A stretch of 64,000 nt of DNA from Scyliorhinus canicula (lineage: Eukaryota). A program made the position numbers and the translations under genes. The stretch is from positions 156,045,155 to 156,109,154 of the forward strand of contig NC_052150.1 of the NCBI RefSeq assembly GCF_902713615.1. The letters run 5' to 3'. The notes beneath the pieces were generated by a model. That model saw only the letters and a list, made by a program, of their open reading frames with translations. It was not told where the DNA came from and did no database searches. Shown here piece by piece: positions 725-56,354 of this stretch. The number at the start of each line of letters is the position of its first letter. Positions within the stretch are counted from its first letter, which is position 1.

Positions 725-3700
725 ATGAGCATCAGGATAAAACCAGATCGCCTGCAGCTGGATCCGCAATCGCCAAACGCCATAAAAGATTTTAATCACT
801 GACTGGCTTGCTTCGAGGCCTATATCACCTCAGCGGACCCCGCACCGACGGAAGCTCAGAAAATTCAACTTCTCTACTCAAGGTTGAGCTCCAGCGTGTT
901 CCCGCTCATACAGGACACGCCGAATTACGCACGCGCCATAGAACTCCTTAAAGAAAATTACGTCCAGAAGACGAACACTCTGTTTGCAAGGCATGTACTC
1001 GCCACTCGCGTACAACTACCTGGTGAGACGATTGAAGACTTCTGGCGGGTCCTTATCCCTCTAGTACGGGACTGTGACTGTCAGGCCGTCACGGCCACGG
1101 AACATTCCAATCTCCTCATGCGTGATGCATTCGTGACGGGAATTGCATCGGACCCCATCCGGCAACGACTGCTGGAAGGAGCCGTGCTCGACTTAACGGC
1201 GACAAAAACTTTAGCGCTCTCCATGACGGTCGCTTCTCGTAATGTACAGTTCTCGCGCGGCCCACCCATCCTACCCCTCGTGGACCCCACAACTGACCCC
1301 CCCCCCGACTGGGGCCGCTCCCGCACAATATGCCCGCACTGCTCGCCACACCACACACTCTGCGGCCAACAGAAGCACCCCCGCCAGCGCTGCCTAGCCC
1401 ATGCCACCACCTGTAAATCCTGTGGCAAGAAGGGCCACTTTGCGGCGGTGTGTCAGGCCCGCGCAGTTGCCGCTATCGCGCCCGACTTCTCTCCCTTCCC
1501 TCAGCCGATCACACAATGGGCGCCGCCATCCTCTGCTCCCGGGGCCACGTGTGACCAGTGGGCGCCACCATCTTCTCCCCCCAGGTCCACGTGCGGCCCA
1601 TGGGCGCCGCTCCCACAACGTACGCACCATGGGCGCCGCTATCTTCTCCCCCACAGGTACTTTGGACGCCGCCATTTCGTCCTCCCTCGGGACTGGACCG
1701 CTGGACCCGGGTTGCTGCCGTTCCTCCTTGGCCGATCGCCCGCTGCTTGCCTCCATGACGCTGGACCAGTCCCATCCTCACAACCTGGCTACTGCTTCGA
1801 CGACGGTGCTCATCAGAGGCCATGCGACCTCCTGCCTACTAGACTCCGGGAGCACCGATAGCTTCATCCACCCGGACACGGTAAGGCGCTGCACCCTTGT
1901 GTTCCATCCCGCCAACCAGCGGATCTCCCTGGCTTCCGGATCCCACTCTGTCCCGATCCGGGGTTTCTGTATGGTCAACCTCACCGTACAAGGCGTTGAA
2001 TTCAGCGGCTTCCACCTGTACGTTCTCCCCAACCTCTGTGCTACACTATTACTGGGCCTGGATTTCCAATGTAACCTCCAGAGTCTCACCCTCAAATTCG
2101 GCGGGCCCCTACCCCCACTCACCGTTTGCGGCCTCACGACCCTCAAGGTTGAGCCTCCCTCCCTCTTTGCCAATCTGGCCGCAGATTGCAAGCCCGTCGC
2201 CACCAGGAGCAGACGGTACAGCACCCAGGACAGGACCTTCATCAGGTCCGAAGTCCAGCGGCTGCTTCAGGAGGGTATTATTGAGGCCTGGAGAGCCCAA
2301 GTGATGGTGGTTAAAACTGGGGAGAAACACAGGATCGTCGTGGACTACAGTCAGACCATCAACCGGTACACGCAGCTCGACGCGTACCCCCTCCCTCGCA
2401 TATCTGATATGGTCAATCAGATTGCACAGTACCGGGTCTTCTTAACGATTGACCTTAAATTCGCATACCACCAGCTCCCCATCCGCAAATCGGACCGTCC
2501 ATACACTGCCTTCAAGGCAGACGGTAGCCTCTGTCAATTTCTTAGGGTTCCCTTCGGCGTCACTAACGGGGTCTCGGTATTCCAAAGTGAAATGGACCGA
2601 ATGGTTGACCGGTACAGACTGCGGGCCACGTTTCCGTACTTAGATACTGTCACCATCTGCGGCGATGACCAGCAGGACCACGACGCCTACCTTGCCAAAT
2701 TTCTCCACACCGCATCTCTCCTCAACCTCACTTATAACAAGGAGAAGTGCGTGTTCAGCACAAACCGCTTAGCCATCCTCGGCTACGTAGTCCGAAACAG
2801 AATCCTGGGGCCCGATCCCGACCGCATGCGCCCCCTCATAGAGCTTCCCCTTCCCCACTGCCCCAAGGTCCTCAAACGCTCCTGGGGTTCTTCTCCTACT
2901 AGCCCAGTGGGTCCCACAATACGCGGACAAGGCCCGCCCACTGATACAGTCTACTCAATTTCCCCTCACAGCCGAGGCACAACATGCCTTCACCCGTATT
3001 CGCTCAGACATTGCCAAGGCCGGGATGCAGGTGCAGTAGACGAGTCAATGCCCTTTCAAGTAGAGAGCGACGCTTCAGATGTCGCCTTTGCCGCCACTCT
3101 AAACCAGGCAGGCAGACCCGTGGCATTCTTTTCCCGCACCCTCCATGCCTCCAAAATTCGACATTCGTCTGTTGAAAAGGAGGCCCAGGCAATCGTTGAA
3201 GCGATGCGGCAGTGGAGGCATCACCTGACCGGCAGGAGATTCACTCTCCTCACTGACCAACGGTCGGTAGCCTTCATGTTTAACAACACACAGCGGGGCA
3301 AGATCAAAAACGATAAAATCTTGAGGTGGAGAATCGAGCTCTCCACCTATAATTACGAGATCTTATATCCCCCCGGCAAGCTCAACGGGCCCCCAGACGC
3401 CCTCTCCCGAGGTACATGTGCCAGCGCACAAGTGGACCAGCTCCGTGCCCTGCATGAGAGCCTTTGCCATCCGGGGGTCACTCGGTTGTACCACCTAGTC
3501 AAAGCCCGCAATCTGCCCTACTCCGTCGAGGAAGTACGGACAGTCACCAGAGACTGCCAGGTCTGTGTGGAGTGCAAGCCGCACTTCTACCGGCCAGACC
3601 GCGTGCGCCTGGTGAAAGCGTCACGCCCCTTTGAACGCCTCAGTGTGGATTTCAAAGGACCCCTCCCCTCCACCGACCACAACACGTATATCCTTAGTGT

Positions 3701-5165
3701 GGTCGGTGTATTCTCTAGGTTCCCATTCGCCATCCCAGATATTACGTCTGCCACCGTCATCAAGGCCCTCGATTCCATATTCACTCTGTTTGGTTTCCCC
3801 GACTATATCCACAGTAACAGGTCAACAGAATGTCGACAGTCACGAGCGATGAGCTGTGTCAGTTCCTGCTCAGCAGGGGTATCGCCTCCAGCAGGGCGAC
3901 CAGCTACAACCCCCGGGGAAACGGGCAGGTAGAGAGGGAGAACGGGACCATTTGGAGGGCCGTCCAGCTGGCCCTACGGTCCAGAAACCTCTCAGCCGCT
4001 CGTTGGCAGCTGGTCCTCCTGGATGCATTGCAGTCCATCCAGTCTCTACTGTGCACTACCACGAATAACACGCCCCATGAACGTGTTTTTACCTTCTCTA
4101 GGAAGTCTACATCCGGGGTGTTGCTCCCGACTTGGCTCACAGCTCCAGGGCCGGTCCTACTGCGTAGGCATGTCCGGCTCCACAAGGTGGACCCTTTGGT
4201 GGACAAGGTACGCCTGCTCCACGCAAACCCCCAGTATGCTTACGTGGAGTTCCCCGACGGCCGCCAGGATACGGTCTCGCTCAGGGACCTAGCTCCCTCG
4301 CAGGGCCGGCTCAAGGCACCGGCAACTCGGGCAGTCGCCCGGGGCGCCATGTGCTGGGGGGCGCCAGAGACTCGGGTCCCGCGCATGCGCAGTTGGGACG
4401 GTGCCAACCAGCGCATGCGCGGTGGCCGCCCTCCCCCAAGGCGCCCCCCCGCTCGGTCCGCTCCCCCCGCCCCCCCCCCCCCGGTCCTCCCCGCCCGCCC
4501 ACCCCCTCCCCTCGGGACCGCCCCCCCACCCCCCTCAGGATCGCCCCCCCCGCGGGTCCGCGCCTCCCCCCTCGGGTCCCCTCGGTCCCCCCCCGCCTCC
4601 CCTCGGTCCCCCCCGCCTCCCCTCGGGTCCGCCCCCCCTCCCCTCGGGTCCGCCCCCCCTCCCCTCGGGTCCGCCCCCCCATCTCGGCCCCGCCCCCGCC
4701 CCCCCCAGCTCCTCCCTCGCCCCCACCCCGGCCCCGCCCGCGGCCCCCGCCCCCTCGGCCCCCCGCCCCCCCCCCAGACCCCCTCAGCCCCCCCCCCCTC
4801 GATCCCCCAAGGGCGCCGAAGTTCAGCTTGCCCGGGGCGCCAGCAACACTAGGGCCGGCGCTGCTCCCTCGGGTGCCAATCCCACTCCCACACACTTCCC
4901 CGCCCACGCGCCACCCTCCCCTCCCCCGGCGCTCCCAGCATCAGCCCCACCAGGTCCATCCCTCCTTCCCCTGCCCACGCTAGAGGACATGGAAGATTTT
5001 GCCACACCCCCCGAGTCATCCAGCCACTGGCCAGCACCAACACTGCCAGCACCAACACCGCCAGCACCGACGCCGTCGACGCCAACACCGCCTGTACAGA
5101 CATCGCCACCACTGTTGCGTCGCTCCCAACGAACCGTCAGACCACCGGACAGACTTAACCTCTGA
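725..5165 (+). pseudogene. Gypsy gag-pol pseudogene
   Basis: ATG 725 with in-frame TGA at 800-802, several frameshifts and a hAT insertion; ends RRSQRTVRPPDRLNL-stop. Confidence 0.9.
4301..4863. mobile_element. Non-autonomous hAT element (Tip100/MER45-like termini) inserted in the Gypsy integrase tail
   Basis: TIR CAGGGCCGGC...GCCGGCGCTG; perfect 8-bp TSD CTCCCTCG (4293-4300, 4864-4871); internal C-rich tandem repeat CCCTCGGGTCCGCCC. Confidence 0.88.
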
Positions 5166-28814: not shown

Positions 28815-29010
28815 TAAAAGCAAATTACTGCTGATGCTGGAATCTGAAACGAGAACAGAAAATGTTGGACAATCTCAGCAGGTCGAACAGCATCTGTGAA
28901 AGAAAAGCGAGCTAATGTTTTGAGTCTGGATGGTCTTGACAAAGGTCATCCAGACTCGAAACGTTACCTCCCTTTTTTCTCCACAGATACTGTCAGGCCT
29001 GCCGAAATAA
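28815..29010. repeat. Penelope-like fold-back repeat with a degenerate hammerhead-like core
   Basis: Inverted arms (cagcatctgtg...gtttTgagtctggatg / catccagactcgaaacgtt...cacagatactg); GAAACGTTA motif near 28958-28966. Confidence 0.6.
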
Positions 29011-40557: not shown

Positions 40558-40844
40558 GATGTGGAGATGCAGGCGTTGGACTGGGGTGGGCACAATAAGA
40601 AGGGTGGGCACAGTAAGAAGTCTTCAACAGGTTAAAGTCCAACAGGTTTGTTTCGAATCACGCTCGGTGGTCGCATAACTATTTAGCATGTGGGAGTCCC
40701 GTTCGTTATCTGAATTAACCAAACAAATCACTCCACCAACTGAGAATGGCCATGCACCTGGTTAATTCTGATAACGAACGGGACTCCCACATGCTAAATA
40801 GTTACGTGACCCCCGAGCGTGATTTGAAACAAACCTGTAGGACT
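40558..40844 (-). mobile_element. Penelope-type fold-back insertion carrying a captured 18S rRNA piece
   Basis: Arms 40558-40661 and 40819-40844 match the 3' part of the repeats at 43025-43240 and 55535-55744. Confidence 0.8.
40662..40818. pseudogene. 18S rRNA fragment present twice in inverted orientation (40662-40758 minus; 40758-40818 plus)
   Basis: Matches conserved eukaryotic 18S GGTGCATGGCCGTTCTTAGTTGGTGGAGCGATTTGTCTGGTTAATTCCGATAACGAACGAGACTC...TAGTTACGCGACCCCCGAGC with scattered substitutions. Confidence 0.92.
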
Positions 40845-41346
40845 CCTCACTGTAACATAATGGTAGATCAAGGAAATGGCTGCTTTGTCCAGAGCACCAA
40901 AATTCTATGAAATATTATAATATGCACCTGGTTCACCACCTTCTATTTGGAAATATATTGAATACATTTATGCCAAATCAATGCACTTCCCCATTATAAA
41001 ATATATGCACATGAACTGCAACATGAGTACAACTCTAGGCACCTCATTGATGGAAGGTCCAGTATTAAAAGTTTTTCTCTCTTTCTGCTCTATCCCATCT
41101 TATTCCTTTTTGACTCCCCTTCCAAGACTATTCCCATGTCCCCATCTCTCTTATTGTACCCTTTTTATGGCTTAATTATTCACACTCTCCAAGACTGGTT
41201 GATCTGAAGATTTCTCTTGGCCCTGATTCTTAGCATGCATTTCCAGGAGAGAACAATTACTATGCAAAGGAAAACTAGATGCTCATTTAGTGGCAGTCTC
41301 CACGTTGCACAGAACTACACAAGTCAAACCTCCATCAAGTTCTTAC

Positions 41347-41465: not shown

Positions 41466-43074
41466 CTAAAAGGTTTGAATAGAAGCACAGAAATTGATTA
41501 TAGCCTGCAGCTGTTAAAAGGCTACTGAAGAGTGCTGTGGGCCTTTCAACAGAAACATGCTGTTTTACGAACATATGTATTAACGAAGATCATTAGCTGC
41601 CATTATGAGGATTATAACCAGGATAATGAAAAATACTGTAATTTTACAACAAACCAATAACACATCAATGCTTGCTATGGATTGTTTAACCACAATCAGC
41701 AAAATTAACCAATTTTGTCGAATTAAATTTTGAAGCATCTTTTTGACATTAATGAAAAACAGTGAAAGAAATTCACAAAACAATTTCCATAATTTTAAAC
41801 ATTTATTAAAGTGAAAATCCTTTCAAAGCATAAAAATAGAAAATAACAAAAAATAGCAAAGGTGTCTTAGCTGGTGAGTAATAAGGCCATTGGCAGCAGA
41901 CTTTTCCAGCTTCAATGCTGGAAGTGTGATGTTAGATAATCTCACTCAGGGATTTGTAGAAGCACTTGAACTGATTTCAATGCTCTTGGGTTAAAGAATG
42001 TAAAAGCAGCAGGGTACATGATGCTGACTGCAAGGTGGATGTTAGGGGAGGGGATACAGGACTGTACTCAGCCAGAGCAGCTTCAATGGTTGAATAGCCT
42101 GTCAACACCTAATGCAAGTAATCAATACCACCAGGAGGTAGAGGATATGGGAGAAAACAGCAAAACATTTGTATGGACAACAGGATAAAAAGAACAAAAA
42201 GAAGTTCCCATTAATCAATTTGTGCTCTGCTACTAAGCAGATTTATCTGCAGTATATTACTTTCAGAAATGCACTCTGCTCAAGTTTGATTAAGGGAGCC
42301 AAATAAATTTGGATTTTAAGCAATGCCACATGTTTGGACAGAGGGCGGCAGGTTAATTTTGGATTACGAAACCTTTGTCAGAACACACTGCTGAAAGGAG
42401 TCTGTGCCCAGGATGTTGATCCATATCTCCCCACTCTTTGTGACAGTCACACCCTCTGTGTTGTCAGTATTTTCTTTCATTTCGAGTTTTACAGCACAGA
42501 AAGAGACCCTTTGTGTCTGCGCCAGCCATTAAGCACCTATCTATTCCAATCGCATTTTCCAGTAGTTGGTCCATTGCTGCTCATCCAAATGTTTCTTAAA
42601 TGTTGTGAGGGCTCACACCTCTACCACCCTTTTGGATAGTGAGCTCCAGATTCCCAACATCGTCTAGTTGAACATGTGTTTCCTCAAATCCCATCTAAAT
42701 CTCCTGTCCCTTACCTTAAATCTATGCACCCTGGTTATTGACCCCTCTGCTAAGGAGAAATGTTTCTCCTTATCTACGTCCCTCAGAATTTTGTACACCT
42801 CAATCAGGTTCTGCATCAATACAAACCCAGCCTAACCAGCCTCTCGATAGTTGAAACTTTCCAGCCCGGCAACATCCAGGTGAATCTCCTCTGCACCCTT
42901 TCTAGCGCAACCACATCCTTTCTACAGTGTGGCGCCCAGAACTATACACAGTGCTTTAGCTGTGGCCTAATGAACCTTTTATACAACTCCATCATAACAT
43001 CCCTGCTCTTGCCTTTATTAGCTGAGTAAAAAGTCTTACAACACCAGGTTAAAGTCCAACAGGTTTGTTTCGAA

Positions 43075-43111
43075 TCACTAGCTTTCGGAGCACTGCTCCT
43101 TCCTCAGGTGA
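43075..43111 (-). ncRNA. Minimal type I hammerhead ribozyme motif
   Basis: TCAC-CTGAGGA-AGGAGC AGT GCTCC-GAA-AGCT-A-GTGA: stem I, CUGANGA core, stem II, GAAA, palindromic stem III, NUH site. Confidence 0.75.
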
Positions 43112-43118
43112 ATCCGAT

Positions 43119-43155
43119 TCACCTGAGGAAGGAGCAGTGTTCCGAAAGCTAGTGA
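43119..43155 (+). ncRNA. Minimal type I hammerhead ribozyme motif (mirror copy)
   Basis: Same motif with one G-U wobble in stem II. Confidence 0.72.
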
Positions 43156-44564
43156 TTCAAAACAAACCTGTTGGACTTTAACCTGGTGTTTCAAGACTTC
43201 TTACTGTGCTCACCCCAGTCCAACACCAGCATCTCCACATCACCTCTATTAGCTACGGCATAGAATATAAGTAAGTAATGCATGTGCCTTCTTAACCACC
43301 TCATCTTCCAGTCTTGCTGCTTCAGGAATCTTTGGACATGCATCCCAAGGGTCCTCTGTACTTCCAAACATCCTGTCATTCATTTTGTAATATTTTGCCT
43401 CGTTATTCCTCCCAAAATACATCACCTCTCACTTTTCAGGGTTAAATTCCATTTACTGCTATTCTTCCTGTCTGATTAGCCACTCCATAATACTGTATCA
43501 TCCTGTAATCTAAGGCTTTCCTCATTGTTATTTATCACACCACCAATTTTCTGACCATACCTCCCATATTCATGCCAAGAAATTAATGTGCACTTCAAGC
43601 AGCAAAGAACCCAGCACTGATCCATATGCACAGGTCTCCAGTCATAAAATCAGACTCCGTAACGACCCTCTTATGGACTGACCTGATTAATACTACACTC
43701 CGGTGTGCTTCATCTGATGCCGGTGTCTATGTATTTACATTCTGTACCTTATGTTGCCCTATTATGTATTTTCTTTTCATGTTCTAAATTATCTGTTTGA
43801 GCTGCTTTCAGAAAAATATTTATCACTGTACCTCTGTACACGTGGCAGGAATCAAGTCCAATCCAAATCAACTTTCAACCATCATCCTATGCCTCCTGCC
43901 AAATTGGATCCAATTTGCCAAATTTTCCTGGATCCCATATGTTCTTACAAGTCTTTTTTCTACTTGACCAGTCTCCCACGTGGGACCTTGTCGAATGTCT
44001 TAGTGAAGTCCATGTAAATGTAAACTACATCAACTGCACTGCCCTCATCTACATACCGAGCTAACTCCTTGAGAAATTCAATAAAATTTGTTAGGCATGA
44101 CCTCCCTTTGACAAAGTCATGCTGACTTTCCTGGATTAATCCTTACCTCTCCAAGTGGAGATTAATTCTGTTCCTCAGAATTTTTTCCAATAATTTCTCT
44201 GCCACTGACGTTAGACCCACTGACCTGTAATTACATGTTTTTTTCCTATTTCCCTTCTTGAATAATGGTAACATTTTAGCTATCCTCTGGTGCTCTGGCA
44301 CCTCATCTGTGGCAGACCAGGTTTGAAAATTAGTATTAGATTCCCTGCAACCTCTTTACTTGTCTCATACAGCAACCTAGGATACATCTCATCTGGGCCT
44401 GGAGATTTATCCACTTTTAAGCCCGCTAAAACCACCAGCATCCCTTCCCTCTTGATGCTAAGCTGTTTAATTAAATCACAGTACCTCTCCTGCTTGCTAT
44501 ACCTACTGAATACCTTACTGTGTCATGAATATTCTGTGTTGCTATTATTTCTGCTTATTGCGAC

Positions 44565-55200: not shown

Positions 55201-55534
55201 GGGCACGCACAGTAACATAGTGGTTAGCACAGTTGCTTCACGGCTCCTGGGTCCCAGGTACGATTCCCAGCTTGAGTCACTGTCTGTACGGAGTTTGCAC
55301 ATTCTCCCCGTGTCTGCGTGGGTTTCTTCTGGGTGCTTCGGTTTCTTCCCACAATTCAAAGATGTGCAGGTTAGGTGGATTGGCCATGCTAAATTGCACT
55401 GTGTCCAAAAAGGTTGGTGGGGTTACTGGGTGATGGGGATAGGGTGGAGATGTGGGCTTAGGTAGGGTGCTCTTTCCAAGGGCCGGTGCAGACTCGATGG
55501 ACCGAATGGCCTCCTTCTGCTCTATAAATTCTAT
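55201..55534 (+). mobile_element. HE1-type SINE
   Basis: Head, core and CR1-like tail. Confidence 0.9.
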
Positions 55535-55744
55535 GTAAGAAGTCTTAAAGGTTAAAGTCCAACAGGTTTGTTTCAAACACTAGCTTTCCGAGCACTGCTC
55601 CTTCCACAGGTGACGGAGGAAGGAACCTGAGGAAGGAGTAGTGCTCCGAAAGCTGGTGTTTGAAACAAACCTGTTGGACTTTAACCTGATGTTGTAAGAC
55701 TTATTAATGTGCTCACCCCAGTCCAACGCCGGCATCTCCACATC
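55535..55744 (+). repeat. Penelope-type fold-back mini-element with hammerhead motif
   Basis: Same family as 43025-43240; CTGAGGA...GAAAGCT at about 55627-55654; inserted in the SINE tail with taaattctat duplicated. Confidence 0.82.
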
Positions 55745-56354
55745 GTAAATTCTATGATTCTCTGACCCTGCCAGACTTGGTTGGGTGGGTTGATTGGGGT
55801 GAAGGGACAAAAGGGGGGTAACACTGATTTACACACTTAACGTTTCAGGTCATACTTGGGTCTTGAGTAAAGGTGAATATAATTACAGCTTGGCATGACT
55901 GTCAGATTTGGACTCTTGAGAGTAAAATACAAACAGGTTTAATTATACCTCTTCACTGTGTGGGGAGGATTCAGCACAATGGTTGTTGCTGTGATACTAA
56001 AGTCCAACCTTCCCACTGCGGCTCGGCCTGTTCCAGACTTGCCGGTTCCTAAGCAACTGGGATTCCACAAGCGCTCTTTCCAGATTTTCCTTTCACCGGT
56101 TCACTCTGCCGTCCAAAACCCGAGAACAACCCCTTTCATTCCCGCAATAAAGGAAAATAATCTTTCTTCTGTTTTTGTTTCAATTGGCTCTTCTCCAGGC
56201 AGGCTATCCAGATACAAAGTTTACATTACAACGGTTTCCAAGGCCAGCCAGTAAGGAAGTGTGACCTAAAGAACGCAGACAGTCAGTTGGTTACAGTCTT
56301 TCTGCAAGTTTCTCCTCAGGCTCATCTTTGACTTCCAACCAGCGCAGTGGAGCA

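Follow-up and report, generated by a model that had tools for sequence, protein, structure and literature searches.

LINE-1 is known to produce template-switch chimeras, in which U6, 5S and other small RNAs are fused to the 3′ parts of L1 or of mRNAs. Penelope-like elements (PLEs) are retroelements whose insertions carry an inverted 5′ copy and, optionally, a “tail” of 30–40 bp at one end (PMC8557442). PLE copies are expected to have target-site duplications (TSDs) of about 8–12 bp in AT-rich surroundings. In the PLE of Adineta vaga, the direct pLTR exceeds the inverted one by 37 bp, and the tail measures 31 bp (PMC3846280). The Anolis PLE has an internal RT start site on either side of the tail, nicks and extends both target strands with a preference for ATT, and starts reverse transcription 85–92 nt after the hammerhead cut (PMC11167929). 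PLEs carry a minimal hammerhead ribozyme (min-HHR), a motif whose typical features were listed by Cervera & de la Pena in 2014, and which is thought to act as a dimer (PMC4209133). In vitro, the PLE min-HHRs described so far are poor cleavers that depend on dimer formation or on a protein (PMC4209133, PMC11167929). The one biochemical study, on the Anolis PLE, saw no RNA-seq reads that ended at the cut site, and cleavage was dispensable for insertion in vitro (PMC11167929). On hammerhead-cut RNA of animal retrozymes, RtcB is an efficient ligase in vitro, joining 5′-OH to cyclic-phosphate ends (PMC7229834). The locus described here is a variation on these known things, namely PLE min-HHRs, inverted PLE insertions and chimeric retrocopies.

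Anatomy of the Chimeric Locus

On the minus strand of the window (the whole 64-kb stretch of DNA that was analysed), 97 nt of 18S rRNA (40758–40662) directly abut element sequence that begins with GTGATTCGAAAC and ends in CACATC (40661–40558), and the junction is C40662/G40661 without a gap. A second, inverted arm (40759–40844) consists of 60 nt of 18S and 26 nt of the element, with a junction identical to that of the direct arm. The two arms (40636–40721 and 40759–40844) are 86 nt each, are 93% complementary, and are separated by a 37-nt spacer. Read along the minus strand, the order is inverted arm (40844–40759), centre (40758–40722), direct arm (40721–40636), and tail to 40558. The parts are as follows:

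40819..40844, plus strand: element part of the inverted arm, 26 nt from the predicted cut onwards, GTGATTTGAAACAAACCTGTAGGACT
40759..40818, plus strand: 18S part of the inverted arm, repeating the last 60 nt (3′ side) of the 18S fragment and ending ...CCCCCGAGC at the junction with GTGATT
40722..40758, minus strand: palindrome centre, the 5′-most 37 nt of the 18S fragment, single-copy, GGTGCATGG...GATTTGTT
40662..40721, minus strand: 18S part of the direct arm, 60 nt, ending ...GCGACCACCGAGC; with 40722–40758 it makes up the 97-nt 18S fragment
40558..40661, minus strand: element tail, from G1.1 of the predicted hammerhead 3′ product (GTGATTCGAAAC...) to the family 3′ end CACATC

Six of the 86 arm positions are mismatched, and four or more of these are ancestral CpG sites that underwent transitions. 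Because the arms differ, and mostly at CpG sites, the palindrome is old and real, and is no assembly fold-back. It is flanked on either side by unrelated sequence. Compared with its siblings, described below, the chimera has a 4-nt deletion and an 18-nt tandem duplication (40619–40602 and 40601–40584) in its tail, and family homology in its inverted arm stops past 40844–40845, that is, at +26 relative to the predicted cut, as against +51 to +54 in the siblings. When the flanks were aligned without bias, the chimera showed no significant TSD, which leaves its outer limits uncertain. A hand alignment, which is not statistically secure, suggests for the inverted arm a 21-nt internal deletion and an end at CTCACTGT, followed by a 10-bp TSD that matches at 8 of 10 positions. 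As a separate observation, the 18-nt duplication (TTCTTACTGTGCCCACCC / TTCTTATTGTGCCCACCC, 40584–40619) occupies the position of the putative second RT start site, at which the inverted arms of the siblings stop.

The captured sequence is a fragment of 18S rRNA. The Rfam model SSU_rRNA_eukarya matches 40670–40755 on the minus strand from model position 1282 (46.7 bits, E 1.5e-10), a score just below the gathering score of 50 bits, as expected of a fragment. The alignment is solid for approximately the first 60 nt. The remaining 3′ 37 nt fall in a variable region that the model aligns poorly, and they match the mouse 18S qPCR primer/probe sequences aacgagactctggcatgctaact and ttacgcgacccccgagcgg (oligos from PMC3052383); the 18S comparison consists of the eukaryotic SSU model and these mouse oligos. 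According to the oligos, the 18S base that follows ...CCGAGC is a G, and G40661 may therefore derive from either partner. Different CpGs were lost in each arm, and comparing the arms restores the ancestral 18S stretch TTACGCGACCCCCGAGC. An earlier note on this DNA had proposed a 97-nt 18S fragment running straight into the element on the minus strand, an inverted copy with the same junction, and a 1-nt ambiguity in placing that junction; the coordinates, the strand, the repeated 60 + 26 nt, the SSU model match and the mouse oligos bear out each of these points.

The Repeat Family and Its Sibling Copies

The sequence GTGATTCGAAACAAACCTGTTGG is found four times in the window at up to 3 mismatches, with 0 expected from shuffles, at 40639–40661 (−), 40819–40841 (+), 43056–43078 (−) and 43152–43174 (+). 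Searches with BLAST and an nhmmer profile define a family of exactly three copies in the 64-kb window: the chimera, copy 2 (43024–43241) and copy 3 (55536–55744). Copies 2 and 3 are head-to-head palindromes with the following parts:

43116..43241, plus strand: direct unit of copy 2, 126 nt; minimal hammerhead 43116–43158, then a 90-nt post-cut tail ending CACATC
43024..43114, minus strand: inverted arm of copy 2, 91 nt; second intact hammerhead, predicted cut before 43078
43012..43023 (left, CCTTTATTAGCT) and 43243–43254 (right, CCTCTATTAGCT): TSD of copy 2, 12 bp with 1 mismatch
55620..55744, plus strand: direct unit of copy 3, decayed hammerhead (G at position 17); tail ends CACATC
55536..55613, minus strand: inverted arm of copy 3, outer end about 51 nt past the cut
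55525–55535 and 55746–55756: TSD of copy 3, TAAATTCTATG, 11 bp, perfect; score reached in 17 of 2000 shuffles

The palindromic arms of copy 2 span 95 nt at 93% complementarity around a centre of 1 nt. In both copies, the direct arm extends to CACATC, 89–90 nt past the predicted cut, and the inverted arm extends only 51–54 nt past it (about 54 nt in copy 2, where the last ~36 nt are missing). The direct arm is longer by 36–38 AC-rich nt, which form a “tail” on one side only. The palindrome tips (43116 and 55620) coincide with the 5′ edge of helix I of the hammerhead, 36 nt upstream of the cut. Both of these clear family targets are AT-rich and contain ATT. The earlier note had stated that Penelope insertions often carry an inverted terminal copy, in agreement with published descriptions (PMC8557442, PMC3846280).

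The assignment of this family to the Penelope type is a structural one, because no PLE ORF was found in the window: a scan of 8 of the 16 window ORFs of at least 180 aa against Pfam found no autonomous Penelope ORF (telomerase-like RT + GIY-YIG endonuclease), and yielded only Gypsy pol and LINE (APE + RT). Membership among the animal non-LTR retrozymes, which are characterized by tandem repeats that each contain a hammerhead, was rejected; the window holds three dispersed copies, all of them head-to-head, and no tandem head-to-tail copies. A search of a viral contig collection for family copies gave 0 matches. A metagenome scan with a family 17-mer returned 103 loci, all of which proved on BLAST to be chance matches; the best of these (L047) shares only 27 nt, in unrelated sequence.

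That the units of copies 2 and 3 both begin at this edge of helix I hints at an RNA whose 5′ end was fixed and may have been its transcription start. This putative 5′ end lies only ~126 nt upstream of the internal RT start, which would explain scattered, tiny “full-length” palindromes. Two other retroelements are present in the window. The first is the pol of a Gypsy-type LTR retrotransposon (884–5165, plus strand), an 843-aa ORF with protease, RT, RNase H and integrase domains. The other is a LINE remnant (15335–18882, minus strand) with ORFs matching Exo_endo_phos (APE) and RVT_1. Mobilisation of the element by this LINE is unlikely, as the LINE has no sequence in common with the Penelope-type tail.

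The Minimal Hammerhead and Its Predicted Cut

The direct unit of copy 2 contains, at 43116–43158, the hammerhead GATTCAC CTGAGGA A GGAGCAGTGTTCC GAAA GCTA/GTGATTC, and both arms of this copy conform to GATTCAC CTGAGGA A GGAGCAGTG(C/T)TCC GAAA GCTA GTGATTC. In the direct unit, GAAAGCTA (43144–43151) is followed by GTGATT from 43152, with the predicted cut between 43151 and 43152; the family sequence on the 3′ side of this cut is GTGATTCRAAACAAACC. Both arms have the CUGANGA and GAAA cores, with an A and not a G at H17. An extra nucleotide between A9 and G10.1 forms an A bulge, and the G10.1-C11.1 pair is present. Helix II consists of 5 bp (GGAGC/GCUCC), helix III is reduced to a palindromic AGCU, and helix I is formed across the cut site by GAUUCAC, which pairs with GUGAUUC at 6 of 7 positions.

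A descriptor was assembled from published min-HHR features (CUGANGA, the extra nucleotide between A9 and G10.1, G10.1-C11.1, GAAA, palindromic AGCU, H17 = A, and 6 of 7 pairs in helix I; PMC4209133). Its sole matches on both strands of the 64 kb are the two arms of copy 2, against a background of 0.03 matches per shuffle, and it places the cut before 43152 (+) and 43078 (−), directly 5′ of GTGATTC. The minimum free energy and centroid folds of the 43-nt motif both consist of helix I and helix II (−12.7 kcal/mol), with a weak z-score of −1.76. The hammerhead of copy 3 has decayed, one arm having G17 and the second arm the changes A6>T and C11.1>G, and its helix II is still paired; among the four arms, helix II pairing is kept through changes of C-G to U.G and of G-C to G.U. 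By these features, the motif of copy 2 is a predicted minimal type I hammerhead of the PLE type, and none of the features published for PLE min-HHRs is missing from it. The chimera is devoid of any ribozyme core, as expected for a 3′ cleavage product.

The Rfam hammerhead models gave no match, whether the gathering score was applied or the limit was relaxed to E ≤ 10, and none when given the 71-nt stretch alone, which is taken as a limit of models that expect the helix III that min-HHRs lack. Other structure searches returned look-alikes. The Rfam match to MIR1219 at 43074–43156 (+) (46.7–46.9 bits, E 8.7e-08) rewards only the perfect palindrome of copy 2, and this match and one to MIR946 are hairpin-type miRNA look-alikes that reflect the palindromes. 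Cofolding of two motifs with RNAcofold collapsed into a full duplex, and is uninformative on a dimeric ribozyme. Elsewhere in the window, a hairpin at 28886–28994 (−) (GTTTCGAGTCTGGATGACC ... CCATCCAGACTCAAAAC) is a weak miRNA-precursor look-alike (MIR6457, E 0.0015, far under the gathering score) and probably an interspersed repeat.

Coincidence of the Breakpoint with the Predicted Cut

The first family base in the chimera is G1.1, or U1.2 should the shared G belong to 18S, and everything upstream is 18S. A 5′ end made by self-cleavage directly explains this position. We favour, at a probability of about 0.62, the reading that the chimera is the retrotransposed product of a self-cleaved Penelope-type RNA that was joined to an 18S fragment before integration. 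The earlier note had placed the junction at the predicted cut, with GTGATT following the hammerhead core of a sister copy, and both the layout of copy 2 and the descriptor agree with this, given the 1-nt ambiguity. It had also proposed that the ribozyme cut in vivo and that its product was joined to rRNA. That part stands as the best reading of one locus with a predicted cut site, and the chimera would then be single-locus fossil evidence of ribozyme cutting in living cells.

The match could also be a coincidence, in which an RT switch, or a 5′ truncation with filler, occurred at an arbitrary position that happened to fall at the predicted cut, the ribozyme being uninvolved. There is a single locus to judge by, some post-hoc selection is possible, the element breakpoints of L1-type chimeras are generally known to be arbitrary, and PLE min-HHRs are weak in vitro. 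Against this, a random breakpoint in the 126-nt unit would come within 1 nt of the cut in only ~2 of 126 cases. Nor is the breakpoint the usual 5′ end of the family, because the tips of the two siblings lie 36 nt further upstream. Had RNA structure made the polymerase stop, one would look for the breakpoint at the 3′ foot of one of the two helices, I or II, and not at position 1.1. A coincidence thus appears unlikely, if still worth reckoning with.

A two-step origin would start from a copy with its 5′ end at the cut that inserted into an 18S gene, or from a chimeric master elsewhere, whose read-through RNA was retrotransposed in trans. Many identical chimeric RNAs would easily account for the same junction in both arms, and PLEs can mobilise unrelated sequence adjoining a pLTR (PMC3846280). 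However, two events are required instead of one, and an element 5′ end exactly at the cut is still needed. Furthermore, the 18S site CCCCGAGC/GGTCGG is GC-rich, in contrast to the AT-rich, ATT-containing targets of the two clear insertions of the family, and the Anolis PLE nicks at ATT (PMC11167929). These points make a two-step origin improbable. Palindromes are prone to mis-assembly (PMC8557442), and the locus might on that ground be regarded as an artefact, or as a DNA rearrangement in which repair or mis-assembly joined a Penelope fragment to an orphan piece of an 18S pseudogene before the palindrome formed. The differences between the arms at 6 of 86 positions, mostly CpG, speak against this, as does the presence of the same head-to-head form in two intact siblings with TSDs, which implies that the duplication arises during retrotransposition. 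Rearrangement or mis-assembly is accordingly very improbable.

Proposed Origin of the Chimera

According to the favoured reading, self-cleavage followed by joining, a Penelope-type terminal-repeat transcript would have been cut by its own minimal hammerhead at GAAAGCUA/GUGAUUC, leaving a ~90-nt 3′ product with a 5′-OH G. This new 5′ end would have been joined to an 18S fragment ending ...CCCCGAGC, either at the RNA stage, by an RtcB-type ligase acting on cyclic-phosphate and 5′-OH ends, or at the cDNA stage, by an end-to-end template jump of the RT. The PLE RT would have started at the internal AC-rich 3′ site of the family (CACATC) and proceeded through the tail and over the junction into 97 nt of 18S. 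Integration would have followed, with the usual head-to-head inverted duplication of the family.

The junction is older than the duplication, because both arms share it and siblings with TSDs show the same duplication; before duplication took place, either the RNA template or the first cDNA already contained it. The palindromes are unlikely to have arisen by intramolecular snap-back. In copy 2 the centre measures 1 nt, and at the fold-back point of the chimera the cDNA end (...CATGCACC) lacks complementarity to the site where copying resumes, without a loop or microhomology. Nor does snap-back account for the constant position at which the inverted arms end on their outer side. This fixed end would fit a second cDNA that initiates from a second RT start on the other target strand, as was observed in vitro for the Anolis PLE (PMC11167929). 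Two cDNAs from two fixed starts would be joined 3′ end to 3′ end, and the two arms of the chimera would be separate copies of one template. Under such a two-cDNA model, the junction would already have been in the RNA, and we lean towards a chimeric RNA that pre-existed reverse transcription.

A pre-formed chimeric RNA favours trans-ligation of the 5′-OH product to a cyclic-phosphate 18S end, and fits equally with transcription from an earlier chimeric DNA copy. If, on the other hand, the second arm copies the first cDNA, an RT jump is equally possible. Ligation and an end-to-end jump alike need an 18S piece that ends in ...GAGC(G). Ligation is put forward as a tentative proposal at somewhat short of even odds, a jump of the RT is rather doubtful, and inheritance of the junction from an rDNA insertion or a chimeric master is improbable.

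Implications

Only a cleaved RNA would be expected to leave behind an insertion whose element part begins exactly at the predicted cut and is fused to an unrelated host RNA. Should further junctions of this type turn up, they would demonstrate ribozyme action in vivo, would map the cut without biochemistry, and would reveal the fate of the 5′-OH product, that is, ligation in trans or a template jump. A census of junctions is applicable to any shark, fish or amphibian genome. One may further speculate that there is a recurrent, ribozyme-gated route, by which an RtcB-type ligase would join the 5′-OH ends of hammerhead-cut PLE RNA in trans to cyclic-phosphate fragments of host RNA, and the PLE RT, initiating at its internal site some 90 nt further downstream, would copy the hybrids into the genome. 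Such a general capture pathway is a hypothesis drawn from one chimeric locus among three window copies, and the odds are well against it. If it were true, the junctions would preserve, across the whole genome, fossil traces of PLE ribozymes at work in vivo.

Comparison with Known Systems

The chimera resembles LINE-1 chimeric retrocopies in that an abundant host non-coding RNA supplies the 5′ part and a retroelement the 3′ part, the whole being integrated as one copy. LINE-1 chimeras break at arbitrary points of the L1 sequence and keep the natural 3′ end of the host RNA, whereas here the element begins at a predicted ribozyme cut and the 18S end is internal; the machinery here is also PLE-type, and not that of L1. 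Like the animal non-LTR retrozymes (PMC7229834; bioRxiv 10.64898/2026.07.22.740005), the family consists of PLE-related, non-autonomous elements. Retrozyme monomers, however, are arranged in tandem and are self-joined by RtcB, whereas the window lacks tandem copies, and ligation as proposed here would be in trans, to a host RNA fragment.

The family resembles described PLE insertions (PMC3846280, PMC8557442, PMC11167929), with which it shares head-to-head palindromes, an inverted arm that is shorter by 36–38 nt, in copies 2 and 3 TSDs of 11–12 bp, AT-rich targets with ATT, and a 3′ end in an AC-rich stretch ~90 nt past the cut (85–92 nt in Anolis). It differs in that its units are only 126 nt long and non-coding, where the corresponding region of the Anolis element is the start of the ORF. 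With the min-HHRs found in PLE pseudo-LTRs (PMC4209133), it has the CUGANGA and GAAA cores in common, and no autonomous PLE with this repeat was seen in the 64-kb window. For the published PLE min-HHRs, cleavage in vivo is unproven, whereas here the element part of one insertion begins at the predicted cut.
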